This document shows positions 456-58,143 of a DNA stretch of 64,000 bases, piece by piece. The notes under the pieces were generated by a model that saw only the letters and a program-made list of their open reading frames with translations, did no database searches and was not told the origin of the DNA. The position numbers were made by a program, and so were the translations under genes. Origin of the DNA: Blepharisma stoltei ATCC 30299 (Eukaryota > Protista > Ciliophora); NCBI GenBank assembly GCA_965603825.1, contig CBFDEM010000022.1, positions 186,001 through 250,000 of the forward strand, given 5' to 3'. Position 1 is the first letter of the stretch. Every line of letters begins with the position of its first letter.

Positions 456-2531
456 TTAATGTGATTTGCATACCAAACATATCATTGATCTGATTTGTGA
501 CATAATAAAAACTTTATCATTTTCTTCTATTCGAAATTCATCAAGTGCTTCTTCCATTTTATCAAGAAACAAATTAAACTCTTCTTCTAAAATTCCTAAA
601 TTTTGATGAATCGTTCTAATAGACCTTCTAAACTCAAGTGACACATTTCCACTGAAAACATTTCGTAGCCCTGATAAAATCATTTTTTGATTCGAATCTT
701 CAAAACGTTTATTTAATTTGTTTTCTGAAATAATTTTTTGAAAGAGTTTTACAACGAATTTATTTCAAAATTCATCTCCTCCATATTTAGAAACGAAATT
801 TTGGTTCAAAGAAGTATTCTTGGAATTTAATTTCATTTCATCATACAATTCTACAATGTCTGAATAGTGTTTTTTGGTGAATGCATGACTTTCATCATTT
901 CATAGCGGTTTATTTCGTTGAGCTTTGTGTCTTGATAATAAATTGTGTTGCAGGCAGGGAAATGAAGGTTTTAAATAGTCTGACTCGTTAGGAGATGGAG
1001 TCTGTGATTTTGATTTTTGTGATATTGAATTTATACGATCATTGTAAATGTTGATACATTGATCTTTAATTGAACAGTTTGAGATTGGAGGAAGGTGATT
1101 TTTTTCAATAATTTTATCGATCTTTTCTGATACTTGAGAGTATCTTTTAAATAAATCTTTTTCAATGGGCTCTGATATTTCGATAGCTGGGCAAATTTTT
1201 GACTTTTTCAGAGATAGCTGCCTTGGTTTGATACTTCTAAAAACATCATTTGGCATATTTTCTGTTTTTTGAATAAAATTGCTTTCTTTTGGTTCGTTTT
1301 CTTCTAAAATATTAATTTTTAGTTCAGGATTACTCTGTGTTCTTTGATGATGGATAACTTTAGAGTTTTTTCTTTTTAATCCTTCTGTGTCTTTGCTTTC
1401 AATTGAGCATTCTTTGCAATCAAGTAGAAATCATTTTTTGTCTTTGCTTTGTATAAAGTCAAGCACAATTCCAGAAATTTCTTTATTCGCCAACACCTTA
1501 CTATTTAAAAACTCAACTAACTGAGAAATCATTCCTTCAATTTCTGTAGTTTTAGCTTTATAGTCAAATGTAAAGCAATCTTCAGGCTTTTCAGTTGTCA
1601 AAATTAGCTTGGTTTCATTTTCTATTTCATTATTAATTTCTTCTAGGGTATTATCGTCATTTAAAAATTGCGATTCTTCTTTTTGCTCTTTTTTTTCCTT
1701 TCTTGACTTCCCAACAACTAAGGATTTGCTCCTTTCTTTTCCTCTTTGCTGGACTCTAAAAGGATTATTAATTGATTGCGATGTTTTTTGCAGAAAATCT
1801 GTGTATTTGAAATTTGCATATTCTGATGAGGTGTTTTTCCTATGGAATTTATTATTTGCTGAATTTATTTTTGGGTTAATTCTTGGACGGCTTTTTATTT
1901 TATTTCTTTTTATTATAGTAAAATACTTTGTTGGCTGCCCAAGTCTTCATAGAACTCGAGTGATTGATATTTGATTAGTCCTGCACTTAATAAACTCTTG
2001 CATTATATCGCATTCCTCTATCGATAATTTTCAAGCTGACTCAGTTTCATCTTTATTATATATTGATACAAAGCCTTTATATGGAATTTTATAGCAAAAG
2101 AGCGCTTCTTCTGTGCTAGATTTTAAATTAAAAATGCTAAAAAATTCATGATCGTTGCTTTCTTTGAAATAAACCTTCCCTGAAGGATTTGTTTGTATTA
2201 AATATGGTTTTAAGCAGTTTTCAAGTCTTACAAGAGTAGTTGGTAAATTTAGGGCAAGACTGCCTGATTTTAAGTTTCTTATTATTGATTCAAAAATATT
2301 TAGTTTGAAGCTATCTGATCCTTTTGGAAGTAAGCTATTTAGCTTTCCTACTGTTTTTTCAAGGTAAGGATTGCTATAAGAAAAACTTTTATTGCTTGGA
2401 TTTAATAGTCCCTTTTTGGTTGAGCTATGAATTAATGCTAGTAAATCTACCTTAAACTCAGCATTGTCAATATCCTCTAAAGCATTTTGATGAGAACTTT
2501 TCAGGCGCTCTATAAAGACTGTGTTTTCCAT
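456..2531 (-). CDS. Array gene 1 (subfamily A): ATP-grasp-like + truncated haemoglobin fusion, ~691 aa with TGA=Trp
   Basis: ORF pieces 456..683, 900..1256 and 2031..2591 are in one frame, separated by TGA at conserved Trp sites (ETESA-W, TRVL-W, GGDEF-W). ATG at 2531 (MENTVFIERL) matches paralog starts. Globin: KYGGDEFW...RSIRTIHQNLGI. Confidence 0.85.
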
Positions 2532-2923
2532 GTTTATTAATTTTAATAGAAGTTCGTAAGTAAGAAACAAAAAAAAATCAAATCGCTCCACAGTTTAAAA
2601 AAGTTTAATGAATTTTATTTTAATATGATTTATATGTCTTATTTAAACATAAATTATGATATTAAATTAAAAAATCCATATGATACGTAAGCTATAAACT
2701 GCTGTCAAAATGTTGCATTCTTTCGAATTTAGCTCTAATTAAAGGATTGGCAATTATAGATGCCTATAATTCTCATATAAGTGATCAATAACTATAGACC
2801 TTTTATGAAATTTCGATTTTATGTTTGATCATTAATTTTTATTTTAATTGAATTTTAGAAATATTTGCTTAAAAATCATTAAGCTTCAATTCATTAAAAA
2901 ATCGAATAATTAATTTAAATTAT

Positions 2924-4957
2924 TTAATATTTGCAAATCAAGCATTTCATTGAGGTCATTTGCTTCATCATAATTTGTTTATCTTCTTCCTCAATTTCAA
3001 ACTCATTTAAGGTGTTCTGAAACAGCTCAGAGTATATATCAAATTCCCATCCATAAATATTCCTGTTTTCATGAGATTTTTTTACACTTCTTCTAAATTC
3101 AAAAGTTGCATTGCCATTAAAGATTTGGCACATTCCACATATTATCATCCTCAAATCAGAGTTTGAGAAATGCTTGCACAAATCATTATTCCCCATTATT
3201 TTCCGATACAGTGATTTTATGAATTCTGTCCAAAATTCATCTCCACCATACTTTTTGACCAAATTTTGGCTCTTCACCTTTGCAAGCTCAGTATTCATCT
3301 TCATTTCATCTATTTTAGTAACAGCATCTAGAATAAGCTTTCGACTCACATCAGAAGTAGTACAGCTGTTTGCTAAATTAATTGAGTCGCTGCTTGCCCT
3401 ATGCCTCAAATAAGAGCATTGAATGCTTTTAGAAGAATCACTAGCCTCGTGATTTAAATGAGGAAGATGAAATTTTGAAAGATGGGAAGACAATTGATAG
3501 CTGCGGATATCTGGGCCACTTAAACAAATATTCTTAGGACTTCCAATAGAAGGCGAATTCAAATTCATAACACGCTCAAGTTTCGCATTAATTTTTGTTC
3601 ATTTTTCAAGGAAAGCTTCTTCTGTATTTAATGTGTAATCTCTTTGATGTTTTTGGGTATTTCGAATTTTAAATGGCAGCTCATGAATCATTTCTAATTC
3701 TTTTTTCTCTTCAGGCTCTTTTTCTATCCTAATTTCTATGTTCGCTTTTTCTCTTTGCATGCTAATTTCCTTATTGGATGGAAATGAGCTTTTACTCAAA
3801 CTAGATGAACTTCTTCTTGAATTTTTTATGGCTCTTATTGATGCATTAGGTGTTTGGTAATTTGTGGTCACTTCTTTGCAACCAATCAAAACCCACTTTT
3901 TTTCAGAATCTCGCATGAAATCAGCTCTGATTCCTTTGACTCTTTCATCTTTATAAATAGTTTTATTTAAAAACGATGCAATTTCAATCATCATTGCTTC
4001 AATTGTGGGATGCCTTATGAAATTTTGGACAATTAGGACATCATCAGAGCTTTCAGTATTTAAAACATAATCTTGATTATTTTCTTCACAACTACGAATA
4101 GGGGTATTATCACCGACTGGAACTTTTAGAAGTTTGGAGGTTGATAATGAATCAGAGAGTTTAGATGTCATTCTTTCAGGAGAGGATACAGGAGAAACCT
4201 TGCAAGGATTATTAATTGATTTTGAAGTTTGCATAATCATGCTTGCATACCGAAAATTGTTTGCAGGGAGTCCGTACTTGGCTTTAATGTTGAAACTACT
4301 ATTCTGAGGCGATTTAGAAGCTTCTCTTGATTTTTTGCAAATTTTTTTCCTGTTGACTATGGTAAAATATTTGCATTTTCTATTAAATTTTCATAAAACT
4401 CTTATTACAGATATTTGGCTTGAATTACATTTTATGTAATTTTGTAAACACGAATTCTCTTGATTTGAATCGAAAGAAGATTCTGCACCTTCTTTTGAGT
4501 AAATAGGAACTGTCTTTTTTTCAGGACCTTTATAAATGTATAATGGCCCTTCTTCCAAATTTTTTTTTGCGAATAAATTTAAATATTCGCTGAGTTGGCA
4601 GGGCCTGGATATAACTTGTCCATTTTTCTTGGTCTGAACTAAGAATGGAGTATCAATATTGGCGATTTTAACAAGTGATGCTGGGATATTTACATTGATA
4701 TTGGTTGAGTTTGAATATTGTGCTAATAAGCTAAAAATATCTGTTTTTATACCGTCTTTCAACTTTGGCAAAGAATTTTGTTTTTTTCTAATTTTTGAGA
4801 AGTTCAGATCATTGTCTTTCTTTAGATTTTCAAAATCTCCATAAGATAAAATGTCTTGCGTAGGTGAATTATTATTATTTAATTTTTCTTCTTCTTGTTG
4901 CTTATCATTAATATTAAGGCTTTCTCTCAAAGCTGCTTGCATTAGATTGATATCCAT
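2924..4957 (-). CDS. Array gene 2 (subfamily B-like): ATP-grasp-like + truncated haemoglobin fusion, ~677 aa
   Basis: Three same-frame ORF pieces joined at TGA; ends in TAA. Globin: LVKKYGGDEFW..LYRKIM..HF..KKSHENRNI. Confidence 0.88.
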
Positions 4958-5342
4958 TTTATTAGAATACTGATGCAGTTACAGAAAAAAAAATAAAAGA
5001 ATTTACTAGCAAAAATTGATGAACAAACAGACTACTATTTAGTCTTAAAATATTTGCGTTCTCTATGAATTAAGATTATGATAAGAAATAAAGATTTGGC
5101 TATGATAAAAGTTGATTTCTGATGGCCATGCTATTTTTATTTATCAATTTTTCGCTAGAAGCTGAAAATTCAAATTTATTTAAATTTGACAAATGATTAA
5201 TTATTTGCTATAATATAAAGAATTTTTTATATTTTAGCCAGTTTAGACAATATTTATTTGATTGATATGAAATACCCATTATGCAAATATGTTAAACTCA
5301 TATGTAAGCTAATCTTAGCTAGTTTCATAAGACTAAGCATTT

Positions 5343-5454
5343 CTATTGTGCCTGCTTACAAATAAGACCTTTCATCGATTTAATTTGAGATGCAATTAAT
5401 TGCTTGTCTTCTTCTTGTACTCGATACTCATCAAGGGTTTTAAGAAAAATCTCA
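5343..5454 (-). pseudogene. Orphan 3' fragment (last ~37 codons including TAG) of array gene 4, left at the duplication junction
   Basis: 5343-5454 is a near-copy of 8173-8284 (…EEDKQLIASQIKSMKGLICKQAQ*), then switches abruptly to a copy of the gene 1/gene 2 spacer. Confidence 0.88.
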
Positions 5455-5748
5455 TTAAAATATAAATTATGATATTAAATTAAAAAATCCATAAGGTACG
5501 TAAGCTAATAAAACTGCACTAAAAATGATACATTCTTTCGATTTAGCTTCTCATTAAAGGATTGGCAATTATAGATGCCTGTAATTCTCATATAAAATTA
5601 TCAATAACTATAGATATCTACATACCTTTTATGAAATTTCGATTTATGTTTGATCATTAATTTTTATTTTAATTGAATTTTAGATATGTTGGCTTAAAAA
5701 TCATTAAGCTTCAATTCATTAAAAAATCTAATAATTACTTTATATTAT

Positions 5749-7779
5749 TTAATATTTGCAAATCAGGCATTTCATTGAGGTTATTTGCTTCATTATAATT
5801 TGTTTATCTTCTTCCTCAATTTCAAACTCATTTAAGGTGTTCTGAAACAGCTCAGAGTATATATCAAATTCCCATCCATAAATATTCCTGTTTTCATGAG
5901 ATTTTTTTACACTTCTTCTAAATTCAAAAGTTGCATTGCCATTAAAGATTTGGCACATTCCACATATTATCATCCTCAAATCAGAGTTTGAGAAATGCTT
6001 GCACAAATCACTATTCCCCATTATTTTCCGATACAGTGATTTTATGAATTCAGTCCAAAATTCATTTCCGCCATACTTTTTGACCAAATTTTGGCTCTTC
6101 ACCTTTGCAAGCTCAGTATTCATCTTCATTTCATCTATTTTAGTAACAGCATCTAGAATAAGCTTCCGACTCACATCAGAAGTAGTACAGCTGTTTGCTA
6201 AATTTATTGAGTCGCTGCTTGCTCTATGTCTCAAATAAGGGCATTGAAGGCTGTTAGAAGAATCACTAGCCTCATGATTTAAATGAGGAAGCTGTAATTT
6301 TGGAAGATGGGAGGACGATTGATAGCTGCGGATATCGGGGTCACTTAAATAAGTATTCTTAGGACTTCCAATAGAAGGCGAATTCAAATTCATAACACGC
6401 TCAAGTTTCGCATTAATTTTTGTTCATTTTTCAAGGAAAGCTTCTTCTGTATTTATTGTGTAATCTCTTTGCTGTTTTTGGGTATTTCGAATTTTAAATG
6501 GCAATTCATGAATCATTTCTAATTCTTTTTTCTCTCCAGGCTCTTTTTCTATCTTAATTTCTATGTTCACTTTTTCTCTTTGTATGCTACTTTCCTTATT
6601 GGATTGTAATGGGGTTTTATTTGAATTTGATGAACCTCTTCTTGAATTTTTTATGGCTCTTGTTGATGTATTAGGTGTTTGGTAATTCGTAGCCACTTCT
6701 TTGCAGCCAATCAAAACCCACTTTTTTTCAGAATCTCGCATGAAATCAGCTATGATTCCTTTGACTCCTTCATCTTTATAAATAGTTTTATTTAAAAACG
6801 ATGCAATTTCAATCATCATTGCTTCAATTGTGGGATGCCTTATGAAATTTTGGACAATAAGGACATCATCAGAACTTTCAGTATTTAAAACATAATCTTG
6901 ATTATTTTCTTCAAACCTACGAATAGGGGTATTATCACCGACTGGAACTTTTAGTAGTTTGGAGGTTGATAATGAATCAGAGAGTTTAGATGTCATTCTT
7001 TCAGGAGAGGATACAGGAGAAACCTTGTAAGGATTATTGATTGATTTTGAAGTTTGCATGATCATGCTTACATACCGAAAATTGTTTACAGGGAGTCCGT
7101 ACTTGGCTTTAATGTTGAAACTATTATTCTGAGGTGATTTAGAAGCTTCTCTTGATTTTTTGCAAATTTTTTTCCTATTGACTATGGTAAAATATTTGCA
7201 TTTTCTATTTAATTTTCATAAAACTCTTATTACAGATACTTGACTTGAAATACATTTTATGTAATTTTGTAAACACGAATTCTCTTGATTTGAATCGAAA
7301 GAAGATTCTGCACCTTCTTTTGAGTAAATAGGAACTGTCTTTTTTTCAAGACCTTTATAAATGTATAATGGCCCTTCTGCCAAAATTTTTTTTGCGAATA
7401 AATTTAAATATTCGCTGAGTTGGCAGGGCCTGGATATAACTTGTCCATTTTTCTTGGTCTGAACTAAGTACGGAGTATCAATATTGGCGATTTTGACAAG
7501 TGATGCTGGGATATTTACATTGATATTGGTTGAGTTTGAATATTGTGCTAATAAGCTAAAAATATCTGCTTTTATACCGTCTTTCAACTTTGGCAAAGAA
7601 TTTTGTTTTTTTCTAATTTGTGAGAAGTTCAGGTCATTGTCTTTCTTTAGATTTTCAAAATCTCCATAAGATAAAATGTCTTGCGTAGATGAATTGTCAT
7701 TTAATTTTTCTTCTTCTTCTTGCTTATCATTAATATTAAGGCTTTCTCTTAAAGCTGCTTGCATTAGCTTGATATCCAT
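5749..7779 (-). CDS. Array gene 3 (recent duplicate of gene 2): ATP-grasp-like + truncated haemoglobin fusion, ~676 aa
   Basis: Same-frame ORF pieces joined at TGA; near-identical to gene 2. Confidence 0.88.
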
Positions 7780-8172
7780 TTTATTAGAATACTGATGCAG
7801 TTACAGAAAATAAAATAAAAGAATTTAGCAAAAATTGATGAACAAATAGACTACTATTTAATCTTAAAATATCTACGCACTCTATGAATTAAGATTATGA
7901 TAGGAAATAAAGTTTTGGCTATGATAAAGGTTGGTTTCTGATGGCCATGCTATTTTTATTTATGAAATTCATCAATTTTTCGCTAGAAGCTGAAAATTCA
8001 AATTTATAATAATTTAACAAATGATTAATAGTTTGCTATAATATAAAGAATTTTTTTTTATTTTTTGTCATTTAGACAATATTTATTTGATTGATATGAA
8101 ATACCTATTATGCAAATATGTTAAACTCATATGTAAGCTAATCTTAGCTAGTTTCATAAGACCAAAACGTTT

Positions 8173-10272
8173 CTATTGTGCCTGCTTACAAATAAGACCT
8201 TTCATCGATTTAATTTGAGATGCAATTAATTGCTTGTCTTCTTCTTGTACTCGGTACTCATCAAGAGTTTTAAAAAAAATCTCAGTATAGCAGTCAAAAT
8301 CTCTTTCGCTTATACCTAAATGATGGTGAACAGATCTAATTTTTCTCCGGAGTTCTAAACCGACACTACCACTGAATATTTGAAAAATTCCTGAATGGAT
8401 TCTTGCAAAATCTTTAAGTTGTGAATTTTTAAAATGTCTGCTTAGGGTTTCAGATGATAAAATTTGATTATAGAGAGAAACAATAAAGCTATCCCAAAAT
8501 TCAGATCCTCCATATTTTTCGACTAGATTTTTAAAGCCTGTCTTTGCCATTTTGATCTTAGATATAATTTCATCAAAGTGATCAACAGTATCAGAAAAAC
8601 ATTTTTTTGTATAAGCATGCTGCTTATCGTTTCACAAAGAATCTATTTGTTTATTTAACAATTTCTTTTTGCTTGCTTGAAATTGATAAATCTGGCTGCT
8701 TTTCTTATCGTTATACGGTGATGAAAAGTTGCTGTTTATAGGATAATTATTACTTGGTTCATCTAAGCAATTTTTCGAAAATACCAGCTTTTTGCTTGAT
8801 ATTATTTTGTTTAGTTTTTCATTTATAGTGTTGTATCTTACAAGCAATTCTTTTTCGCTATCTATGCTTGCCTTATTAACTTTGCTTGCCTTTTTCCTTA
8901 TTTTAAATGGAAGCATATTTTCATTTTTTACTTCTTCACGAACTCGTTGCAAGCTATTTTCTTTTGCTCTTCCTTCTGACTTCTTTTTAACTGTTTCATC
9001 AAAAGATCTGGCTCTTCTTGTCTTCAGAATTTTCATTTGTTTATTTTTCATCCTCCCTATTTCGATTGGGAGTTTACTATCAATAAAGTATTCATTACAT
9101 TCTAAAAAAAATCAATTTTGATTTTTATCTTGTATAAAGTCCAATACAATCCCACCAACGCCTTGCTGATAAAATACCTGCGTACTTAAAAAATTCACAA
9201 TTTCTTCAAGCATCTTTTCTATTTGTGGAATTTTCGTATTAACTTCTATCCCATAGCAGCTTTCAATTTCTTTGGTATTCACAACAAAGCCTCTATCTCG
9301 TGCATCATTAAATATAATTTCGTCAAGCGAAAATGATTTTTCTTGAACACTCAGGTCATCTTCTTCTAAAATGCATTCTGAGCTCAACGATGCTTCAAGT
9401 GGAAAATTATTTGTTTTATTTGATTTATGAGGAATTTCAGTTCGAGAACGGACCAATCCAGATCTAATAAACTCTTGAGGCTTTGATTTAAGCTTGAAAG
9501 GGTTATTAACTGACTGTGAAAGAGGCTGAATCATGTTCCTATATTTAAAATCGCATAAATTTGAATACGATTTATTTAGCGTCATGGCTCTTTTTTTATT
9601 TCTCTGTGGATTTTTGAAAGATCTATAAATAGTTTTTGAACGGTTGATAATAGTGTAGTATTTAGATGTTGTACATTTTCTTCAAACAACTCTTATAATT
9701 GATTGCGGATTGCTCTTGCAATTAATGAAGTATTGCAATAAAGCATTGCTTTCTGCAGATTTCCATGTTTTTTTAGCATCATCAGCTGAAAATAAAAGTG
9801 AAACTCCTTTACTCTTTAGTTTATAGCAAAATAATGGAATAAAAGAAGATCTTTTATTTGTAAAAGGCTCAAAAAAGTCATCTTCTACAATTTCACTTGA
9901 TTGAACTTCAATAGACCCATTTTGGCTTGTGAATAATGCAAAGGGAACTGAAATATTGTCCATTTTCAAAAGAGTGGTAGGGATACTGATTTTTGGTTTG
10001 ATTTTCGTATTATATTTTGCAAATTGTTGAAATATATTGAGGTTCTGTGATTCTGTAGACTTAGGAAGCAAATTATTTAATTTGTGTACATAGGAATTTT
10101 TGGCAAATTCAGGAAATGCAATTGCTTTCGACTGAATGGATCGAAGAAGCCCTTTCTGCAATGAGGTGTTAATTAGTGATCTAATATCTTCTCTGAAGTT
10201 GATAATTTCATCTCTGACGATTGCATTTTGATGAAAATCCTTCAAGCATTCCAAGATTTTAGGGATATCCAT
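8173..10272 (-). CDS. Array gene 4 (subfamily A): ATP-grasp-like + truncated haemoglobin fusion, ~699 aa; retains an E-x-N motif
   Basis: Four same-frame pieces joined at TGA. VLDFIQDKNQN-W-FFLECNE; globin LVEKYGGSEFW…RSVHHHLGI; TAG stop. Confidence 0.88.
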
Positions 10273-10415
10273 TTTTTTGTCCTCAAGATAGTTAGGATTA
10301 ATTTTTAACTTTTATTTCGCCAATATCCAAAAAAAAATAAAGAATAAATAACATTTTATCTAATAATATACCTTTAAGCTACTTATGAAATTGACATTAA
10401 AATTGCTTATAATAA

Positions 10416-12482
10416 TTATATAAGCTTGCTATTATTTTTCCCTCTGCAAATAAGCCACTTCATAGACCTAATTTGAATCATTATAATATGTATGTCTTCG
10501 TCTTTTACATCATGCTCACGAAGCACACTATCAAAAATATCAACGTACAAGTTAAATTCTTTTTCAGTAATTCCCATCCCTTCATGCACAGCTTTAATTC
10601 TTCTTCTAAAATCAAGCGTAGCGCACCCATTGAACACTTTAAACATGCCATTAAAAATTGTTTGCAAATTATAATGCTCATAAAATTTGGTCAAAGCATC
10701 ACAAGCCGTAATCTTCTTATATAGTGAAGAAATAAAGCGGCTTCAAAACTCGTCTCCTCCATAAGCTTCAACTAAATTTCTACTCTTTATTTTTAAAAGT
10801 TCTGTATTCATATTCATCTCATCTATTTTATCAATGACATCTGTAAAGCATTTATTAATATGGTCGTTATATTTATTATCCCACAGAGAATTCGAAGTAT
10901 TATGAATATTCGATGCAGGAGACTCGTGGATGTCTTTTTTCCCTTCTTCAGGAGAATTAGTAATTGTTAAATCAGTCATTGAATCACTTTTAATATGCCT
11001 TGCTTGATAAGCTCTAATGCTTTGTTCTTCAGCGTCAACTAGCCTAGCCATCATAGATGGCTTCAAACTTACTGCATGGTCTATTTTTTTGGAAGCTTTG
11101 TGCCATTTTTCCATAAAATCAGATTCGTTAATTCCTGATTTTTGACTATCATTTAAAGGGGAATTTAAAATAAATGGGCAACTTTGCATAACTCCTGGAG
11201 TCAAACTCATTTTTCGGAGAGGCTTGCTTTCATCAAGCTGTGGAGAAGATGGGAGATAAGGGCATTTAGGGGTAGAGTCTGCAATTTGGTTGATTTTAAT
11301 GTTAAAGTTGAAATTTTTTATGTTTGGCTTCGGCATATTTACATATGATAAAGTTCTTCTTTTCATTTTTGGTGGTAAATCAGCTCTTTTTACATATCTT
11401 ATTTCCGGAAGCATTTTTTGCTGCAAAACAATTTCTTTTGAGTCTAAAAACACCCACTTTTTGTCCTTATCACAAGTGAAATCAAGTAGCATTTCTCCAA
11501 GTTCTCCATTTCTATATGCATTATCGCATAAAAATTTTGTAATTCTGTTGACCATGTTTTCTATATCAGCTACTTTTACTGTGTCTTCAATTACAGTTAT
11601 AGTGTCAAGTTCGCGTGGATTCACAATATTGCTATTTGTATTATTTGGCAAACTCATCACAGTTGAGATTTCACATAAGTTCTTATCATAAAAAGCAGGA
11701 TTCAGTATGCTATTCTGAGACATCAGCGACTCTGTGCGCTTATGTTTTAATTTGTCCTGAGCTAAGGTGACTTTAAAAGGGTTATTTATGGATTTTGAAG
11801 TTTTGGAAATCATATCAGTGTACCTAAAATCTCCACCCATCATGGTATTGCTTCTCTTTTTCTTGCTTACCATTGTAATTGTGTTGAGTTTTTTTATTGT
11901 TGTTTCTTTTTGCGTAAAATTGTACTTTACTCGGTTGGAAATCAAGAAATATTTACTTTTCATCCCAACTCTTCAATGGACTCTTATTATTGATGAAGGC
12001 TTAGACCTACAATGAACAAAATGCTGAATCCTCGCTGCAGTGTTGCTGGTGGAATTCCATAAGGATTCAGCGCTTTCTCGGGTATAGAGAAAGATAGTTT
12101 CGTGGCCTACAGTTTTATAACAGTAGATTGGGGATTCATGGTCACTTTTCCCGTTATATAAATTGAAAAATTCGCCTTCTGAACACTGTTTTGAGGTCAC
12201 CGCTCCATATTTATTGCTTTGAACCAAGTAAGGCTGTCCTACAGTGCATAGGCGAACTAGTGTGATGGGGATATTAATACATAAGTTATTTTGTTTGGCA
12301 AAGGTTGAAAAAAGTCGAAAGGGGTCAAACTGTTGCCCATTGTACAGCTTCGGTAAGGAATTGAATTCCCTGTGATTGGTGACGTAGTCGTCTATTTTTT
12401 GCCTTTGGCTTTGCTGGCCGTTTGATGGGGTTCCTGTTGAGATATTGCCAAAATCGTCAATTGCTATTTCACTTTCTTCCAT
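10416..12482 (-). CDS. Array gene 5 (subfamily B): ATP-grasp-like + truncated haemoglobin fusion, ~688 aa
   Basis: Same-frame pieces 10416..10694, 10743..11963 and 11973..12482 joined at TGA (IIRVH-W, GGDEF-W). Confidence 0.88.
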
Positions 12483-15349: not shown

Positions 15350-17422
15350 TTATCTGCATACTAACCCTTTCATGGAATTTATCTGAGCCATTATTATTCG
15401 CTGATCTTCGCTATCAATATCAAACTCCAAAAGAGTAGCGTTGAATAAATTTACATAGGAATTAAACTCAAATGTCGTAATGCTCATATTTTGATGAATT
15501 GACCTTACTTTTCTTCTAAACTCTAACGAAATATCTCCATCAAATATTTTAAACATCCCTGTCACAATCATATCAAAATTCTCAACACGCGTAAACTTAA
15601 ATCTAGCTTTTAAAGCTGCATTTTGAAGAATTTTACTATAAAGTGATATAATAAATTGGTTTCAAAAATCATCTCCGCCGTATTTCTTAACCAAATTTTG
15701 TTTTTTAGTTCTAGATATTTGTACATTCATAGCCATTTCATCAATATTATCGACAGCATCCATAATGCATTTTCGAGTAAAAATGTGTTTTTTATCATCC
15801 CAAAAAGTTTCTTTTGGCTGAGTTTCTTTTTCATACTCGCTTTGAATGGAATTTCAACTTTTAATTTTTGGGTCCATTTGAGGTGTCTTACAGAAATTAT
15901 ACATGGGTTTGTAGTTTTTGATGCTTTCTTCTTTAGGGTTAAATGTTCTTAATCATTCTGATTGGCCTTGAGTCAGAATTTTATCTAATTTTTCGTTTAC
16001 TTTATTGCATCTTTCCAGAAGCTCTTTTTCACTCATCATTAAAGTTTTCTCTGCCATAGCAGGCCTTTTTAATTTAATTTTAAATGGTAGATTCTTTTTG
16101 CTTTCTTGAGTATCATCATAATGTGCTTTGAATTTTCCTTTGGCTGGCTTTCTCTTTTCAGCCTCTTCTTCTATATTTGAAAACTCAAGAGATTGTGATC
16201 TGTTTGATTTTTGGGATTTTCTGCGTAGATTGAGATTATTGACTTCAAGATTGATTCTTGAGCCGCTTGTATATTCTTTGCAGTTTAATAGTACCCAAGA
16301 ATTAGTTTTGTCTTGCATAAAATCTAGGACGATTCCTTTGATATTATATTGCCGAAACACCAATGTGTTTAAAAAATTAATAATCTGATCAACCATGGCT
16401 TCTATATCGTCGATTTTGATGAAGGTTTCTATTGCACAGCAACTCTCAGTATTTTTGGTTGATACAATGAATTCTTTATTAAGCTCATCTTTTAATAGGC
16501 TTATGGTTTGAGGAGAAATCCAGTGATCAGTATAGTCAATGTCGCTTGAACTCTTTTCTCCATCTACGTTCGTATGAAAACTACTATCAAGTGTAGAGCT
16601 TTTTTCTATGTCTAAAGTGAATGAATGTGATTTATCTCTTTCAACTCTTTTGCTTAGTTTGAAAGGATTATTGATAGACTTTGAAGTAGGGAAAATTAAA
16701 TTTGTATATTTAAATTCAGCCATGCTTGTAAATGAGCTATTCCTCTTATGTGCGTTGATTTTTTTATTTGGGCTTTTTTTCTCTTTTTCATTAATCATCC
16801 TACGATTTATGATGGTAAAATATCTATTTTTCATACCTTCTCTCCATAATACTCGGGTTATAGATGCAGGGTTTGACTTTCCTAGGATAAAATTTTGTAA
16901 GCAGCGTTCTTCTTTATTCGAATTTCAAAATTTTTCTGATTGCTCTTTTGTGAAAAATAAAAGTAATTCTCTGCCTTGGATTTTACCACAATTTAATGGA
17001 AAATTGTCATTATTCATTTTACATTTGTGGACAAAAAATTCATCTTCATGGCAGGGTTTTACTTGCAAAAATCCATCCCTTCTTGTTTGAAGCAAATATG
17101 GTTTTTCTCTCCCTTCGAGTCTTAAAAGTGTGGTGGGGATGCTAAGCTTGATTGTCGTTTGGTTTTTTGCAAGCAAAGAATATAAGTTCAGTCTTTTACT
17201 TAGAGAAGCTTTTGGTAGTAAATTATTCAGTTTGCTGATAAAACAGTTTTGGCCATGCTCAGGTACCTGCGAAACAACTCTATATACAGATCTCATAAAA
17301 CCTGGCTTTGATGATTGATTATAAATTGATCTTAATTCCTCTCCTATAACTCGATATTTGCTTTCTTCCTCCTCATTTTGATGAATATCATTTAGGTTCT
17401 CTAAGATCTTAGGGACTTCCAT
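15350..17422 (-). CDS. Array gene 7 (subfamily A): ATP-grasp-like + truncated haemoglobin fusion, ~690 aa
   Basis: Same-frame pieces joined at TGA. KYGGDDF-W-NQFIISLYSKIL…RSIHQNMSI. Confidence 0.87.
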
Positions 17423-17772
17423 TAAGGCTTTATAAAAAAATACTTAATAAATTTTTTTTGAAATGATTAAATGCATTGATAAAAACGAAAAATAATTATA
17501 GCATATCGCAATACAAGCTACTTTGCCACCATTTTCTTTTAGAGTTAAAATGCTTTCATATACATGAAATAAGAAAATTGCTTTTTATTTAATCGAAAGT
17601 ATTTAGATCGGTAAATTAATTATCATCTTAAAAAAAATAAAAATATAAATTAACAAAAGAATACATCATGCATATTATATTAAGATGCAGAAGATAAGAT
17701 ATATTCCGATTAAATTTATGATTATTTAATATGCAAATTATAAGACTTAAGTTGTAACAGCTAGTTATTTTA

Positions 17773-19704
17773 TTATGAACCTATCTGAGGATATCTACAG
17801 ATGAGGCACCTCATAGATCTAATTTGTGTCATGATGACTCTTTTGTCTTCCTCTTCAATTTCGAACTCATTCAATGTACTTTCGAAGAAATCGGAATAAA
17901 GATTGAAATCTTTATCACTAATTCCCATAAATTCATGGGCTGCTTTTATTTTTCTCCTAAATTCTAAAGTGGCGCACCCATTAAATACCTTAAACATCCC
18001 TCCAATAATCATGTCCAAGTGAGACCCAACAAAATACTTATGCAGACTAGATTCATCTGACATAATTTTCTTATATAAAGACCTGATAAATTTATTCCAA
18101 AAATCATCTCCACCATACTTTCCTACTAGATTTTGATGTTTAACCTTTAAAAGTTCTGTATTCATGTTCATTTCATCAATTCTCCCAATAATGTCTGCAA
18201 AGCATCTATGAATATGCTGGTTTTCGTTATCCCACAGTGGGTTTGACGTAGGCTGTGTATTGGAAGTCAATGGACTTGAATCTGTTTCTAAAGAAGGTGT
18301 TGTTGGCTCTATGACTGTCCCGTGCCTTGCATTGTATCTTGTCTGATAAGCTTTTATGCTTTGTTCTTTTGCATCTTTTACATATGATGGCTTCAAGCTC
18401 ACAATTTTTCCAAGTCTTTCATTGACTTGATTTCACCTGTCGAACAAATCTTTTTCGCTTGCAGAAGTTGGGATGAGCTTTGGGGTTGATTTAATTGTAA
18501 AAGGGCAGCCAAGACTTGAATGAGTTGATGGAGTTTTATTGATTTTGATATCAGGTTTTGGGGTGCTTCTTTGGCTCTCAAGTATTAAAACTTCACCATA
18601 TGAGCTGGTCCGCCGTTTACTTAAAGGCTTTAATTCTACTTTTTTGCCGTTTTCAAAAGGAGTTTTGCATCTTCCTACAGAAATTTCTTTGCAGTCTAAT
18701 AATACTCATTTCTGCATTTTGCAAAGAACAAAATCTAAAACAATTCCATTAATTTCTTCTTCTTTATATACATTGGAATTTAAAAATGCCACAATTTGGT
18801 CAACTATAGGGTCTAGCTCAGCTCCTTTAATCGAGTCTTCTAAAACTAAGATATTATCAGTTTTCTTTGGATCCACAATCATATTGTTTTGGTCTTGCAG
18901 CTGAAAATCCCTTACTTCTATGTGCTTTTCATCTTTATTTTTAGCTGTTATCATTTTATCAGACCTAGTTTTTTCTCTCCTCATAGTCCTCGAAAACCTA
19001 CTTACTTTATATGGATTATTGATAGATCTCGATGTTTTGAGAATCATATCTGTGTATTTAAAATCTCCTAAAATGCTTAAACTCTTTTTCCTCTGGTACA
19101 AGCTTGGAGTTGCCGAAACTTTTCTTTGGGTTTCACACAAATTATTTATGACGTGAATCCTGTTAATTATTGTAAAATATTTTGATTTCATGCCAGACCT
19201 TCATAAAACTCTAAGAATTGACTTAGGGTTTGATGGGGATTCTATATAAGTTTGAATCATTGCGGAGGAATCTGTGGAAGAATTTCAAAGCGACTCAGCA
19301 GCCTCTTTAGAATTGAGAATAATACTTTCTTTATCAAAGCGCTTATATAAATAAGTATGCCCTTCACAGTTTTTATTTTTGTGGGAAAATATAAAAAACT
19401 CATTGTCTTTGCAAAATCTCGAGCAGAGTATTCCATTACTTTTTGCTCATAGTAAGCATGGGATCGGCAAATCTTCGGATTTTATTAAAGTTGTTGGCAA
19501 GTTTATATTGAGCTCTCGGGAATTTGAAAATAGCGCAAATAAAGTAAAAATATTGATTTTCTTTCCATTCGTCAGTTTAGGCAGGATGTCAAGGTTTTTC
19601 TTAGTATTATTGCCTGGATTTTTGCAAATATTTGTGGAGCTTCTAATAGAGCATCTGGAGATTGGCATCATAAATGTTTCTGTGCTTTTTTTGAGCTCGT
19701 CCAT
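17773..19704 (-). CDS. Array gene 8 (subfamily B): ATP-grasp-like + truncated haemoglobin fusion, ~643 aa
   Basis: Same-frame pieces 17773..18402, 18706..19191 and 19447..19704 joined at TGA. Confidence 0.87.
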
Positions 19705-20181
19705 CTAAGTCGTAATGAAAAATTATCTTATCCACGAAACATGGTTTAACATAAACCAAGAATCATGAATTAACTCATTTAAAAGATGTTGATTTTCTTA
19801 TTTTCCAATGAAAGCTTTATATTCTGCTCATTATGATTCTATGGAATGACAAATTATCCTTAAGATTTAAGCTATCATTTTTTGCCTTCATTAAATATTT
19901 ATTCAGACCTTTATTGATGAAAATTATTGATTATTATATGATTAATAACTAGTCTGATAAATGAGTCTAATTGAATATTTATTATTCTTATTTTATTGAA
20001 TGGAAAAAGTACTTAGGATATAGACACCAGATAATTGCTTCTAAACATATAAATATTCTCACTGCTAAAACTAAGCCAAATGCATAGATCTATAATAAAT
20101 TTTACTTCAACCTCATTATTCTCCAATTAAATTTCGATCTCAAAAATTATAAATGAGCTATTAATTCATATATATTATTAT

Positions 20182-22173
20182 TTAAAGCACTGTTTGTCTG
20201 CAAATTAAACATTTCATTGACTTGATTTGCGACATTATCATCTGCTTATCTTCTTCCTCTACATTAAACTCAATCAGAGTATCCTCAAACAATTTAATAT
20301 ACAGTGAAAAATTGCTCTCACTTATTCCTAAAGAATTGTGAGCAGATCTCACATTTCTCCGAAATTCAAGTGTGGCACATCCATTAAAAATCTTAAACAT
20401 CCCATCTGCTATCATTTTCACGCACGAAGTTTTAAAATAAGCTTTCAATGACTCAAAGCTCAAGATTTTTTGATAAAGAGAATCTATAAACATGCTTCAG
20501 AATTCATCTCCTCCATATTTTCCAACAATATTATGCCTCTTTATTTTTAAAAGCTCTGTATTCATCCTCATCTCATCTAAGTGGTTGATCCCTTCTGATA
20601 TGAATTTTCGAGTATGGTCAAGCATTTTATCAGTAAAAACTGCATTTGTAATAGGCTCTGTTTTAGCAGGTGACCAATTTTCTATTTTTGAAGGAGATGA
20701 AGCTTCTGTTGTTCGCACGCTTCCTTCTTCTTTATTTTGAGATGCAAAAAACGAGTAGCTTTCAAGCTGGAATCGAGCTTGATAAGCCTTTATGCTTTGC
20801 TCTTTAAAGTCTACATCTCTTAAGTAATTTAGTGGGTTTAAATTTACTATTTGGTCGATTTTCTCGTTGACTTTATTGCATCTTTCTAATAATTCTTTTT
20901 CAGACCGATGCCCTTGAGCATGATGATGCTTTGGGCTTGTTCTAATTCTAAAAGGACATTTAACTTGCTCTTCAGTAGTTATAGCAGCTTGTTTAGAGTC
21001 TGCATCAGAACACATTGGCGAATCTGTCTTATTTTCATAACTTTTCAGCATCACAAATGACTTACTCCTTCGCTTCTGTGTATTAGCTTCATATCGTTTA
21101 AGATTATCTACTTCAGGTGGCAGCTTGCTGTTTAAGCTGATTTCTTTGCAATTAAGAAAAACTCATTTACTATCTCGATCATAAACAAATTCAAAAATCG
21201 CGCCTTTCAAGTCTTCTTCTTTAAAAATATAAGCATTCAAAAAATCAATGATTTCGCTTATCATTGCTTCTATTTCAGGTATCTTGTTTTTATTCTCTAC
21301 CACAATAAAACTTTCTGGGTTATTTTTATTAAGAATGTACTTTTGGTTTTGCTTTGCCTTAAAAGCGAAAATTGATGGGTCGTCTGATCTGGTTTTTCTA
21401 ATCATAAAGCTTGGGTCATCCATATTTGCTTCTGAAAACGAATTTGTTAATTTTGGCCTTTCTTTGAGGCTGGATTTTGACGCTGCGTTGATTTTGTATG
21501 GGTTGTTAATAGACATTGAAGTTTTGAGAATTAAATTAGTGTATCGAAAATCAATCGATTGTGTTTTTTTCCTTTTGAAGGAAGAAGAAGGACACGTAGT
21601 TCTCTTTTGAAAATCTTGAGATCTAATTATAGGTTTTTCACAGCTGATAATATTAAAATATTTTGTTTTTCCTGACCTCCACAAGACTCTTGTAAGAGAT
21701 ACTTGTGAAGACATGCATTTTACATAATACTGGACGATTGCTGAAGAATCTTTGGAAGATTTCCAAAATGCCTCAGCACTTTCTTTTGAATGGAAAACAA
21801 TGCTTTCTCTATACAGTGATTTGTACAAATAAATTTGTGCTTCATGCTTTTTATTTTTTTGACTCAAAGCAAAAAAATCATTTATCCCGCATGGCCTACA
21901 ATGAAGAATGCCATTGGTTTTAGTCCTAAGCATGACAGTATGCTCTAAATCCTCAGTCTTAATAATTGTTGTCGGTATATTTACATTAAAGCTCCTTGAG
22001 GCAGAGTATAAGGCAAAAAGACTATAAATATCAATTGGTTTGCTATTAAATAGTTTCGGAAGATTGCTGAGCCCTTTACTGAACATGTCATTGGCTTTTT
22101 GAGGTGAATTTATAAGCGAGGCTCTACCGTTTGCCAATGAGAAAGGGTCTGTGCAAAATTTGAGCTCTTCCAT
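20182..22173 (-). CDS. Array gene 9 (subfamily B): ATP-grasp-like + truncated haemoglobin fusion, ~663 aa
   Basis: Same-frame pieces joined at TGA (RDSK-W, GGDEF-W). Confidence 0.88.
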
Positions 22174-22543
22174 CTATTATTCCAAGATTTTCTTAAACCA
22201 ATAAAGATGCTTATTAATAACCTGCAATTAATATAAATCAGAGCATGTTAAGAAAGCTGATAGAGATAAATTTTAATATAAATTGATGCTAACTGATAAT
22301 TATTTAAATGTTAAATTGATAAGACGAATACTATATCAATCCAATATTTTTATAATAACCTTAAAAAAATGTCAGAATTGATTTTAAGGTAAGATAAAAA
22401 TTCTAGTAGTAATCTTTTAAAATTCCATTAAAGCGTTTTATATCTTGTAGTTCATATTTTGTTAAAGTTATTAACATAAGTTGATATTTATTATATAATT
22501 AATATTTAATAAAAAGAAAAAGGGCAAAACTTTACAGCGAATC

Positions 22544-24604
22544 TTATGAACTTTGTCTACATATCAAACATTTCATAGACCGAATTTGTGTCATCACAAT
22601 ATTTTTATCAATATCAGTTACCTGAAATTCATTTAATGTGTCTTCAAAAATATCTACGTAGAAATTAAACTCTTTTTCCACCAATCCCATAAATTGATGA
22701 GAAGCTCTTACTTTTCTTCTAAACGCGAGAGTTACATTTCCATTAAAAAGTTCAAACATTCCATCCACTATCATTGCAAAATTTTCAAGCTTAGAGCTCT
22801 TGAAATATTTACTAAGAAGCTCATTTGCAAGAATTTTATTATAAAGCGAGAGTATAAATTTATTCCAAAATGCGTCTCCTCCATATTTTTCTACTAGTTT
22901 TTCATTTTTTACTTTCGCAATTTGTGCATTCAAATTCAGTTCATCTAAGCTATCAATCATATTGTTAATATGGTTTCTTGTGTAGGCATCAACTTTTTCA
23001 TTAAATGAACCTTCTGAGTTATTTGACGAGTTGCTGCTCTCAATTGTCGCTTTCTTATAAAATGGACATTTAAATTTAGATATTGATGGGTTCCAAATTG
23101 AGCATGACTGAGGGCTTATTCTTGCTTCATAAGCTGGATTGCTTTGAGGCTCGGTGAAGTGTGAGCTTAGGTTGATCTCACTTTGGTGGCTTACAATTTT
23201 ATCAATTCTTTCGTTTACTTTAGAGCATCTCTCAAAAATATCTTTTTCCGACAAATCTATAGGTGTAAGTCTATGCCTCGGCTTAGCTTTATAGCTTTCA
23301 GCTAGAGTGCTTTGAGTTTCTTCATTTTTTATACTCGGCTCTACCTCTGATGTTTCTAATTTTAAGGTTTTTAGTTTTAAATCTCGGCTAAAATCATTTG
23401 ATTGGCTTCTTTCTTTTCTTATATATCTTTTTTTCTCCCATCCATTGTTTAAAGCACAGCTTGTTTGCAAACTTTTATTATAGCTATTTGAAAATTCTTT
23501 GCACTTAAGCAAGACCCACTTCCTCTCATTATTTAGTATAAAATCAAGTACAATTCCTTTCACATTATCTTCTTTAAACACTTGTTTATTCAAAAAATCA
23601 ATAATTTGAGATACCATTGAACAAATTTCTTCATATTTTCCTCTGCTTTCAACAACACAGCATTTTTCAATTTTTTTAGAGTCGACTAAAAAATCGGCAT
23701 AGGAGTCTTCTCGAAGCCTTTTAGATGCTTCACTCTTGGGTTCCTGAGCAGGGAAAATTGTATCATCAGTAGGAATTTGGCAAAAAGATTGGGATAGAGA
23801 AGGGATTCGGTTTTTTCCTTTTTTCTCAATTGTTTTGATTTTAAAAGGATTGTTTATGGATTGAGAAGTCTGCTTAAGCATTTTTCTGTACTCAAAATTA
23901 GAGAGTGTGCGCTTTCTAACACCTTGCTGCCTATTAGGCCCAAGTTTGCTATCATTTTTTATATCCCACTTGAGCTTCTTATTGTTTATAATTGAAAAAT
24001 ATTTATTTTTTGACCCTTCAACCCATAGCACTCTTGTGATTGATGGCGGGTTTGATAGACTTTTAACAAATTTCTGTAGTCTTGCAGGCTCTTTTGAAGA
24101 TCTCCATATATTTTGAGCATGCTCTATTGAGCATATAACACTAACTTCTTTATTCGGGGTTTTATACGCATACAAAGGCGTACCTGCATTCGTTTCTTTA
24201 CATCCTTCATTTTCCATCTCAAAAAACTCATTCTCATAACACGGCCTAGAAGCCACCTTTCCATTTTTTATTGTGCGAATTAGAAAACAGACAGGTAGAT
24301 TCTCCGTCCTCATAAGAGTAGTAGGAATATTTACGTCAAGGTTATTGAGATCGAAGTGTTTTACGAACGTTTCGAAAATATCCAGCTTTCTTTTGAATAA
24401 ATTGTTTGGCAGCAAGCTGTTAATTTTTTTTGTGTTTAGACTCTGCAGATATTCAGATTCACTTCGAAGCCCTTTGAAATGGCCTTTTTGTTTTGAGTCC
24501 TTTATCATTGAAGCCAAATCTTCCTGAAAACTTTGAATTTCATCTTCCTCCATCGCTTTTTGGTGGAAAACATTTAGGCTCTCCAGTGTCACAGGCAAAT
24601 CCAT
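22544..24604 (-). CDS. Array gene 10 (subfamily A): ATP-grasp-like + truncated haemoglobin fusion, 686 aa, no internal TGA
   Basis: Uninterrupted ORF showing the full architecture; it has TGG-Trp where paralogs have TGA. Confidence 0.93.
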   Translation of the reverse strand: MDLPVTLESLNVFHQKAMEEDEIQSFQEDLASMIKDSKQKGHFKGLRSESEYLQSLNTKKINSLLPNNLFKRKLDIFETFVKHFDLNNLDVNIPTTLMRTENLPVCFLIRTIKNGKVASRPCYENEFFEMENEGCKETNAGTPLYAYKTPNKEVSVICSIEHAQNIWRSSKEPARLQKFVKSLSNPPSITRVLWVEGSKNKYFSIINNKKLKWDIKNDSKLGPNRQQGVRKRTLSNFEYRKMLKQTSQSINNPFKIKTIEKKGKNRIPSLSQSFCQIPTDDTIFPAQEPKSEASKRLREDSYADFLVDSKKIEKCCVVESRGKYEEICSMVSQIIDFLNKQVFKEDNVKGIVLDFILNNERKWVLLKCKEFSNSYNKSLQTSCALNNGWEKKRYIRKERSQSNDFSRDLKLKTLKLETSEVEPSIKNEETQSTLAESYKAKPRHRLTPIDLSEKDIFERCSKVNERIDKIVSHQSEINLSSHFTEPQSNPAYEARISPQSCSIWNPSISKFKCPFYKKATIESSNSSNNSEGSFNEKVDAYTRNHINNMIDSLDELNLNAQIAKVKNEKLVEKYGGDAFWNKFILSLYNKILANELLSKYFKSSKLENFAMIVDGMFELFNGNVTLAFRRKVRASHQFMGLVEKEFNFYVDIFEDTLNEFQVTDIDKNIVMTQIRSMKCLICRQSS

Positions 24605-24886
24605 ATTAATTTATCGGGTAAATAAAAAATTACCAGTTTTATGCGTGTTTCTTTTATAGTAAAGAGAAAAATAATTAAAATCTTCCTTCTTATAATTATA
24701 CAGTAATCAGTTTTCATCAAATATGGAACCAAAAATGAATTATTTTCTTTCATTTTGAATTCTTTAATTAACGAATTCGCTGGCAAAATCATATATAAAT
24801 TAAGTTTTTATCCATTTAGTTGATACTATCAAAATTTCAGCTGTTTATTTCAATAATATGGCTGTTTTTCATATTCTTAACTTTAA

Positions 24887-26905
24887 TTAAATATTTTTAG
24901 TTATTAGACATTTCATTGATTTAATTTGAGACATTATCAGCTGCCTGTCAACATCTTCAACCTGAAATTCGATTAAAGTCCCTTCAAAAATATCTGCATA
25001 ATACTCGAACTCACGGTCAGTTATTCCCATTTTTTGATGAGAAGACCGAATGGCTCTTCTGAACTCTAGATTTACCATTCCGTTGAAAATCATGAGCATT
25101 CCATTCATGATCATTGCAAACGTGTCTAGCTTTGTTTGCTTGAAATATTTAGTTAAGGCTTCATTTGCTAATATCTTATTGTAAAGGGATAGGATAAACT
25201 GGTTCCAAAATTGTTCTCCTCCGTACTTCTCTAAAAGATTTTTGTTGACTTTTGATAGCTTTGTATTGAATTTTGCTTCATCGAGGGTATCTATTACACT
25301 TTTATAGTGCTTTCTTATGCAGAGATGATTTTTGTCACTGTTTAAAGAATCTCTTATAAAGGAAGCATTCTCAATTTTTTGGTTGGTTTTTGGGGGACAT
25401 AGAAATGGGTTATTAGAAGGAATTGGGGAAAGCAAAGATCGAGAATTATATCTTATCTTATACGCTTGTATGCTTTGCTCTTTTAAGTCCATTGACGATA
25501 AACTTACAGAAGGCTTATGGCTAACAATACGGTCAATTCTTGCATTAACTTTACTTATCCTTTCCATGAGATCTTTTTCCTGCACTTCAGGCTTTAAATA
25601 CTCTTTTGGCTTAGCCCTAATTTTAAATGGCAGCTCATTTGTTTTTTCTCTGTGTTCTTTATATATAATAAAGCTTGTATCCAGATCTTTTTTGTCAATT
25701 TCAATTTTGGTACTAGATTTTTTTAAGTCACATGACCTACTTCTAGTAGAAATCGATGGAGTTGATTTTCGCTCTTCAATTATGTTTGCATCTAATGTCA
25801 GCTTATATATCAGCGAATACTCTTTGCAGTCTATAAGCACCCAATTCTTATTTTTATCTTGTATAAAATCAAGCACGATTCCTTTAATTCCATCATCCCT
25901 AAATACTTTGGTATTTAAAAATGAAATGACTTCAGATACCATGGCTTCGATTTCTGGGATTCTCCCTTTATTCTCCACCCCAAAGCAGCTATCAGGAATT
26001 TTAGAATTTACAATGAATTCTTTTGATAATGATAAATCAGGGCTGCTTTTTTCGTTTTCCTCGCCTAAATTTAATGAGCTGTCATTTCCTAATATTTCAG
26101 TTTTTTCCTCATGAATATCATTGAGATCTGGAAACTCAGCAGGATTTTTTCTGACTATTGACTGAGTTAGCTTAGACAGCATTTTAGAGGGTGTCATGCT
26201 TGGAGTGATTGATGATGCTCGATTCATTCGTCTAACCATCCTTTTAGGTGTGCTATTTGTGGATTCTGCTTTAGTTTTGTTTTTTACTTTGGAGCGGTTG
26301 ATAATTGTATAGAATTTGAGCTTACATCCAATTTTTCAGAGCACTCTTGTAATAGAAGCAGGGTTTGAATAACTTTGAATGTAATATTGCAGCATTGCAG
26401 GGGCTTTGGTTGATTTTCAAATTGCTTGAGCACTTTCAACAGCATTTAGTATTAGAGTTTCTTTGTTTTTGGCTTTATAGCAAACAATTGGACCATTTTC
26501 GTCACTTTTTCTCTGATTTAGCTTGAAAAAATCATTATCAAGACACGGCCTTGATACAACTGCCCCATTTTTTAAAGTTTGGATCAAAAATGGAACAGAA
26601 ATATTTTCAATTCTTAAAAGAGTCGTCGGAATGTTTACAATTACTCTTATAGAGTCCAAATGCTTAGCAAGTAAGCCAAACAGATCTAATTTTTGGTTTC
26701 TTGCTAATGGAAGTAATGTATTTAACTTTTTAGTGTAAATGTTCTGTATATAATCTTCTTTGTTTTTAGTGCAATTAAAAAGACCTTTTTCTGCTGATTC
26801 ATTTATGAGGGATATTACATCTTCTCTAAAGTTTTGAATTTCATCTCTTTCCATAGCTCTGTGATGGTAATCTTTGAGATTCTGCAAAATAACTGGAATA
26901 TCCAT
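24887..26905 (-). CDS. Array gene 11 (subfamily A): ATP-grasp-like + truncated haemoglobin fusion, ~672 aa
   Basis: Same-frame pieces joined at TGA (SAQAI-W, TRVL-W). Globin LLEKYGGEQFW…RSSHQKMGI. Confidence 0.88.
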
Positions 26906-28818: not shown

Positions 28819-28872
28819 TTATATGAAAGAAATAATTGAATAAAGATAGCTAAAAATGAGTCAAGCAATAAA

Positions 28873-42173: not shown

Positions 42174-42252
42174 CTATAATCTTTATTTATTTATATTTAT
42201 TAGGAAATTTATCTCAAAATTATAAATTTGACGTTACTGATAATTAAAAAAA

Positions 42253-58123: not shown

Positions 58124-58143
58124 CCTAATAAACTTTAGGTAAT

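Follow-up and report, generated by a model that had tools for sequence, protein, structure and literature searches.

The first part of a 64,000-nucleotide stretch of the genome of the ciliate Blepharisma stoltei ATCC 30299 (assembly GCA_965603825.1, contig CBFDEM010000022.1, here C22, positions 186001-250000; the whole stretch is called the window below) is filled by an array of genes whose products seem to join an ATP-grasp-like domain to a globin. The question raised by this locus is whether such a union is real, what its two halves are and what a protein of this kind could do. An earlier reading, made from the letters of the window alone (the sequence-only reading), had proposed a candidate family of globin-coupled sensors. 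Analysis of the window and of the genome (41.5 Mb, 64 contigs) shows that the fusion is real and transcribed, that its C-terminal ~120 aa form a truncated haemoglobin of the group I 2/2 type, the pocket of which is remodelled and hydrophobic, and that the nearest solved relative of its N-terminal domain is DC4, a subunit of the outer-dynein-arm docking complex of trypanosomatids. The architecture, assembled from two known folds, is a real kind of chimeric globin that is undescribed in the literature searched.

In the macronuclear genome of B. stoltei UGA encodes Trp and introns measure 15-16 nt (bioRxiv 10.1101/2021.12.14.471607). With UGA read as Trp (table 4), positions 456-26905 contain exactly 11 minus-strand, head-to-tail open reading frames (ORFs) of 643-699 aa, g1 to g11 (Table 1), just as the sequence-only reading had it; genetic codes 1, 6 and 15 were rejected, as the genes fragment under them. 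The in-frame TGA codons of the array genes sit on aligned Trp columns. The proteins can be aligned from end to end with pairwise identities of 27-44%, except for g2/g3 (92%), which stem from a recent duplication of 2.8 kb that left behind a dead copy of the 3' tip of g4. The spacers within the array measure 143-791 nt, with a GC content of 20-24%. The eleven genes stand as proposed, but the array does not begin at 456, four further genes on the contig upstream of it bringing the total to 15. One upstream member (C22:178561-180651; L016:6562-8661), compared locally with an X placed at the break, has its frame interrupted by a TAG where the C helix of the globin begins, a position at which its twin in a second array (see below) has Tyr; this has the look of a truncated copy or allele and not of a 15-nt intron.

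Transcription was followed in four read runs classed as RNA-like, a status guessed by the tool. Their contigs cover g8-g11 only and show a gap at every spacer, with no joints; a single contig runs along g9 in all four runs and along g10 in three. Moreover, a polyadenylated MMETSP transcript of a relative (2097 nt) holds one 684-aa frame with both domains, the sole TGA of which falls at the conserved Trp of RV.W. Because of these spacer-gapped contigs and this two-domain transcript the fusion is regarded as real and transcribed, the two halves belonging to one transcript, as previously supposed. Two separate genes, or a misassembly, were rejected on the same evidence and on that of many standard-code homologues. 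No introns were seen in g9 and g10, the genes for which reads were checked, according to the RNA-like contigs, and an intron pattern scan of the array gave only two candidates, both in g7, one of which (16 nt) would break an intact frame.

For the C-terminal domain of the fusion, the assignment to the group I truncated haemoglobins (trHbs) made from sequence holds. Residues 560-686 of g10 match the group 1 trHb of Tetrahymena pyriformis without gaps (expectation value, E, 2.4e-4 with a single sequence), and profile searches brought the match to the Tetrahymena trHb to 2.8e-8 and 2e-11; group I chains lead the profile matches (1e-11 to 1e-5), group II-type chains appearing at E>0.01 only. In the AlphaFold model of full-length g10 the predicted local distance difference test (pLDDT) exceeds 90 across the globin, and the template-modelling (TM) scores to THB1, THB4 and THB11 are 0.74-0.78 (0.78 for THB1). 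Ungapped alignment to the T. pyriformis structure (3aq5) assigns Tyr588 of g10 to B10, Phe601 to CD1, Phe609 to E7, Val613 to E11, His636 to F8 and Tyr649 to G8. Throughout g1-g11 His F8 and the AB Gly-Gly are retained (11/11), Tyr B10 and Phe CD1 being found in ten genes each (Phe in g1 and Tyr in g5, respectively). Every one of the 27 genes in the two arrays has His F8, as do 94% of 87 fusions; like CD1 Phe and G5 Phe, this residue is nearly invariant.

The fusion globin shares its 2/2 fold, as well as the AB Gly-Gly, Tyr B10, Phe CD1, His F8 and Phe G5, with the group I (N) trHbs of T. pyriformis (3aq5), Paramecium (1dlw), M. tuberculosis (HbN) and Chlamydomonas (THB1/THB11). It differs from them in being the C-terminal domain of a protein of 650-700 aa and in its Leu B9, Phe/Leu E7, hydrophobic E11, Met E14, Tyr G8 and single EF Gly. 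In ciliate trHbs, e.g. that of Tetrahymena, a distal network of Gln E7/E11 stabilises O2 (PMC7082302); in the array E7 is instead Phe, Leu or Val (Gln only in g1), E11 is hydrophobic (His in g4) and G8 is Tyr. A few paralogues bear the automatic UniRef name 'globin family profile domain-containing', the remaining ones having no such name.

The N-terminal domain found no match in Pfam, including its ATP-grasp and TTL models, in NCBIfam or, with a single sequence, in PDB. A profile of 15 sequences gathered 186 clusters at 50% identity together with a faint PDB match to Leishmania dDC4, and a profile of 119 sequences reached dDC4 (9e78_5K) with E 2.7e-8 and T. brucei DC65 with E 1.5e-3. Further, a model of g10 residues 58-378 (pLDDT 83.7) retrieved dDC4 (1.7e-9), DC65 (4e-7) and TTL (5.8e-4) in Foldseek, while VIA structure comparison gave dDC4 Z 18.2 (222 residues, root-mean-square deviation 3.9) and DC65 16.6; 21 chains had Z>=8 and the top 50 were of ATP-grasp type. 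Thus, three methods give DC4 as the nearest solved relative. TTL/TTLL and synapsin have the ATP-grasp fold as well and come clearly behind DC4, at Z ~11 (TTLL11 and synapsin, 11.3). The DC4 proteins (dDC4 9e78_5K/9y6s_5K; TbDC65 9e5c_7c) resemble the fusions in an ATP-grasp-like fold devoid of the catalytic motif, in the motifs IP(D/T)T, LQ.FI.P, RV.W and W.L.C and in paralogous diversification; they differ in the lack of a globin and in having 2-3 paralogues versus ~57 fusions here. In trypanosomatids dDC4 is an ATP-grasp-like subunit placed on the DC1/DC2 coiled coil and touching the outer dynein alpha heavy chain (PMC7617938; PMC11971395); it has proximal and distal paralogues, its loss slows swimming (PMC7617938), and orthologues are reported from Chlamydomonas and other flagellates and ciliates (PMC11971395).

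The sequence-only reading had also envisaged a nucleotide-binding or TTL-like output. The ATP-grasp fold stands, and the motifs KYGG, PTTL, YK, Q177, R191-V-x-W and D354-F...W are present in g1-g11, with Lys148, Gln177, Arg191 and Asp354 invariant or nearly so; the TTL-like character does not, DC4 being nearer. The first metal Asp of ATP-grasp proteins is retained. The second acid position reads D/G/G/E/D/G/N/D/N/K/D from g1 to g11, being Asp or Glu in 16 of the 27 array genes and Asp in 20 of 82 sequences family-wide. The Asn position is mostly Lys: the catalytic E-x-N is lost in 10 of the 11 genes, its Asn is replaced by Lys, Arg or Gln in 26 of the 27 and E-C-N survives in g4 alone. The E-C-N of PruB aligns with K-C-K of the family profile, a site at which DC4 itself has no catalytic residues. 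In ATP-grasp ligases the residue preceding the Arg that corresponds to Arg191 is acidic; here this ribose-binding position holds Ile, Leu or Lys. Because E-x-N is lost in 10/11, the N-terminal domain is probably a pseudoenzyme, and a ligase output is unlikely because both that motif and the ribose-binding acid are absent.

The two domains of g10 are separated by ~150 residues of low confidence, among which are a single conserved helix (453-474) and, leading into the globin, a long one (534-565); a further helix (residues 3-39) precedes the DC4-like domain. The linker helix at ~450-474 has, by eye only, a likeness to the helix after the DC4 core, for which nothing is claimed.

How these segments evolve can be judged from a second array. 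A 16-gene twin at C58:651521-690427 (L033-L037) is collinear with that of the window and has the same flanking gene (window ~28870-29346), which speaks for an ancient duplication in Blepharisma, either of a segment or of the whole genome. The pairs are g1-c6, g2/3-c7, g4-c8, g5-c9, g6-c10, g8-c11, g9-c12, g10-c13/14 and g11-c15, with identities of 49-69%. In these nine pairs synonymous divergence (dS) ranges from 1.7 to saturated, whereas non-synonymous divergence (dN) is 0.13 in helix 533-565, 0.16 in the globin, 0.22 in the DC4-like core and ~0.4 in the linkers: the fusions are under strong purifying selection. Twins agree in their individual pocket residues: g1 and c6 have Gln E7, g4 and c8 His E11, g5 and c9 Phe E11, and g11 and c15 Met E11. 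This argues for a heme chemistry that may vary from one paralogue to another, a variation that selection may have favoured. Purifying selection combined with paralogue-specific pocket residues suggests that the putative heme sites are tuned.

Searching the genome contigs with the globin of the window's clade revealed 53 loci (E<1e-49); four older fusions (on C33, C32, C23 and C4) raise the total to ~57. Stand-alone trHbs number at least seven, three of them in tandem at C54:165910-168007 and others on C44, C38, C32, C18, C11 and C41. In a wider set, a globin is present in 87 of 155 retrieved proteins. Intron-containing relatives were scanned exon by exon, with no joined spliced models. Many of the retrieved proteins lie on gene-dense eukaryotic metagenome contigs (GC content at third codon positions 0.31-0.60), at least one with TGA as stop, and those that can be named all come from cilia-bearing groups (Ciliophora, Oomycota, Ploeotia, Aphanomyces). 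An environmental homologue (L053, at 3904) has a 15-nt intron at profile position 67/68, as do older Blepharisma DC4-like genes; the position is shared at L041:1190, L042:1354, L043:3475, L045:1280, L046:1227, L047:1331, L052:2892 and L053:3904, in genes with and without globin, and the intron is lost in the expanded clade. This points to heterotrich hosts and common descent. Because the fusion is also found in other standard-code ciliate-like genomes, it predates Blepharisma: the lineage expansion previously proposed applies to the 53-gene clade, which alone is a Blepharisma expansion, and not to the fusion itself, which is older and wider. A quick tree (unrooted, with long branches, the DC4 sequence left out) splits a 21-member globin-free clade, including Ploeotia and Aphanomyces proteins, from a fusion-dominated remainder (Shimodaira-Hasegawa-like approximate likelihood-ratio test, SH-aLRT, 97) and recovers the window's clade as a well-supported group of 31, suggesting that the fusion may have arisen once. 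The DC4 fold is a large family in ciliates and oomycetes, unannotated and without a Pfam model. Several DC4-like relatives end in a Cys-rich segment (C.G..C / VC..C).

What such a protein might do has been considered in the light of both domains. Within oxygen gradients ciliates take up positions of their own, and heterotrichs (Blepharisma, Stentor, Spirostomum) live at oxic/hypoxic boundaries, as described for Spirostomum (PMC7813818). An established molecular receptor through which O2 acts on the ciliary beat is not known. We infer heme binding, a ciliary location and sensing for the fusion proteins, and tentatively propose, as a quite possible reading and the likeliest of those considered, a sensor of heme ligand or redox state. 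Its non-catalytic DC4-like domain would dock it on complexes of cilia or other microtubule complexes, and helix 533-565 would serve as the transducer. The globin would bind heme via His F8, and its pocket, which has Tyr B10 and Tyr G8 but lacks Gln E7/E11, would bind O2/NO (nitric oxide) weakly or act in redox. The conserved helix and the linker helices would relay the ligand state to the DC4-like domain. The latter's role would be that of a protein-docking module, working on the axoneme (outer dynein arm docking complex) or on other complexes associated with microtubules. The many paralogues could then differ in the ligand level to which they respond, in their place along a cilium or among cilia, or in both, and gas or redox state would tune ciliary beating. 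Globins are not foreign to cilia, since THB1 cycles through Chlamydomonas flagella (PMC2806276) and androglobin, a further precedent (PMC13331133), is found in the Tetrahymena central apparatus (PMC8175508). A narrower version, in which the sensor sits inside the outer-dynein-arm docking machinery and dozens of differently tuned paralogues adjust the heterotrich beat to O2, NO or redox state, possibly regionally and with no second messenger, is rather unlikely.

Several observations weigh against the proposed docked sensor. The predicted TM score of the full g10 model is 0.51, its linkers are long and of low confidence, and contact between the domains is not predicted. Tyr B10 is conserved in only 45% of the family, and some relatives have no globin or no His F8. 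Identity of the N-terminal domain to DC4 is just 13-14%, and a common fold shows no function; a profile of fusions alone reaches dDC4 with E 0.014, versus 1.2e-8 for a globin-free profile, so that the fusions are, as far as sequence comparison goes, DC4-like paralogues, their orthology to DC4 being undemonstrated. Finally, Blepharisma has ~30 globin-free DC4-like loci (those inspected lack a globin) which could fill the DC4 role, and ~57 genes are many for one repeating axonemal site.

The same facts bear on the rival explanations. In one of them the fusion is a tethered gas- or NO-handling enzyme, whose globin buffers O2 or scavenges or makes NO with the DC4-like domain as a mere anchor and no interdomain signal. 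Group I trHbs are indeed NO dioxygenases and nitrite reductases (PMC7082302), the disordered linkers and low overall model score suit a tether, and a high copy number suits a dosage role; however, the O2-stabilising glutamines of Tetrahymena trHb are replaced here by Phe/Leu and hydrophobic residues, Blepharisma already has its stand-alone trHbs, the globin-adjacent helix is the most conserved segment and paralogue-specific pockets fit tuning better than bulk scavenging, which leaves this explanation improbable. Little credence is likewise given to a non-ciliary heme-regulated protein (of the cortex, cortical microtubule rows, myoneme or cytosol) or a scaffold with a largely non-heme globin, for which the link to DC4 would be one of ancestry only. 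The separation of the fusion clade from the globin-free clade with its non-ciliate members, an expansion that seems confined to genomes of heterotrich type, where cortical microtubule systems are large, and the degenerate globins of some relatives speak for it; the near invariance of His F8, CD1 Phe and G5 Phe and the axonemal place of the sole characterised member of the N-terminal family speak against it. Least probable is a globin-controlled ATP-grasp enzyme, a TTL-like ligase or nucleotide switch: the fold, the four invariant or nearly invariant residues, the second acids and the E-C-N of g4 would favour it, and nucleotide may be bound without catalysis, as in synapsin, but the substitutions at E-x-N, the second acid and the residue before Arg191, the missing N-terminal TTL domain and the lack of any Pfam ATP-grasp/TTL match stand against it.

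Compared with known chimeric globins, the fusions resemble globin-coupled sensors (HemAT, DosC-type) in that a globin is joined by helices to another domain, with a proposed ligand-controlled output. Globin-coupled sensors have an N-terminal 3/3 S-family globin and an MCP, GGDEF or kinase output (PMC7475203), whereas here a 2/2 T1 globin lies at the C-terminus and the MCP, GGDEF and kinase domains gave no Pfam match in the fusion; the membership of that family advanced by the sequence-only reading must therefore be dropped. Its view that the architecture is undescribed agrees with the literature searched, in which no paper brings globin, ATP-grasp and ciliate together in a relevant way (subscription papers, such as a survey of globins of microbial eukaryotes, lay outside it) and DC4 is treated only in two trypanosomatid papers. 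Chimeric 2/2 globins are known in general (PMC7475203, PMC7082302), and chimeric T1 globins have been mentioned in parasitic ciliates, their partner unnamed (PMC7475203). Androglobin, another chimeric globin of eukaryotes, is connected with motile cilia (PMC8175508, PMC13331133), but it has a permuted 3/3 globin and a calpain-like domain, exists in single copy and belongs to the central apparatus; homology to the fusions was neither sought nor seen. If the proposed docked sensor is true, the fusions would give, besides androglobin, an independent second case of a chimeric globin with a link to motile cilia. They offer ~57 concrete candidates for an O2 receptor tied to ciliary beating, raise the known globin count about ninefold (~7 stand-alone trHbs versus ~57 fusions) and place globins among the larger sensor-like families of the Blepharisma genome, while the DC4 fold, which entered the literature in 2025 as that of a docking subunit of trypanosomatids, becomes a large eukaryotic family recruited as carrier of a heme domain.

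Table 1. Coordinates of the array genes, the domains of g10 and the traces of duplication (positions in the window)
Feature	Position	Strand	Description
g1	456..2531	-	691 aa DC4-like/trHb fusion; Phe B10, Gln E7; collinear twin c6 on C58
g2	2924..4957	-	677 aa fusion; recent duplicate of g3 (92% aa)
Recent tandem duplication	2637..8287	.	units 2637-5457 and 5450-8287, 94% nt identity
Dead globin 3'-end fragment	5352..5465 (C22:191352-191465)	-	copy of g4 3' tip; E 5.5e-9
g3	5749..7779	-	676 aa fusion
g4	8173..10272	-	699 aa fusion; His E11; sole E-C-N at ATP-grasp metal motif
g5	10416..12482	-	688 aa fusion; Tyr CD1, Phe E11
g6	12872..14848	-	658 aa fusion
g7	15350..17422	-	690 aa fusion; no twin in C58 array
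g8	17773..19704	-	643 aa fusion
g9	20182..22173	-	663 aa fusion; single unspliced RNA-like contig in four runs
g10	22544..24604	-	686 aa fusion without TGA codons; reference protein; transcribed in one piece
g10 residues 58-378	23471..24433	-	DC4-like ATP-grasp-fold domain; disordered insert at ~residues 211-300
g10 residues 533-565	22910..23008	-	long helix into globin; most conserved twin segment (78% aa); candidate transducer
g10 residues 566-682	22559..22909	-	group I 2/2 truncated haemoglobin; Tyr588 B10, Phe601 CD1, His636 F8, Tyr649 G8
g11	24887..26905	-	672 aa fusion; final gene of array

Beyond the array, the long ORFs at 29382-30344, 30460-31899, 32225-35491, 42244-43725 and 48723-50672 (320-1088 aa with UGA as Trp) gave no Pfam match in the pieces scanned. 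The gene adjoining g11 encodes a leucine-rich-repeat protein of 537 aa (27205-28818, minus strand). Other neighbours in the window encode a WD40 protein (35678-39271, plus), an ammonium transporter (44493-45680, plus), a kinesin (45716-48103, minus), ribosomal S9/S16 (52455-52940, plus), ENTH (52978-54840, minus) and VTT (54841-55737, minus) proteins, a methyltransferase (58132-58773, plus) and a protein with a nucleoside phosphorylase-like domain (60598-63009, plus).

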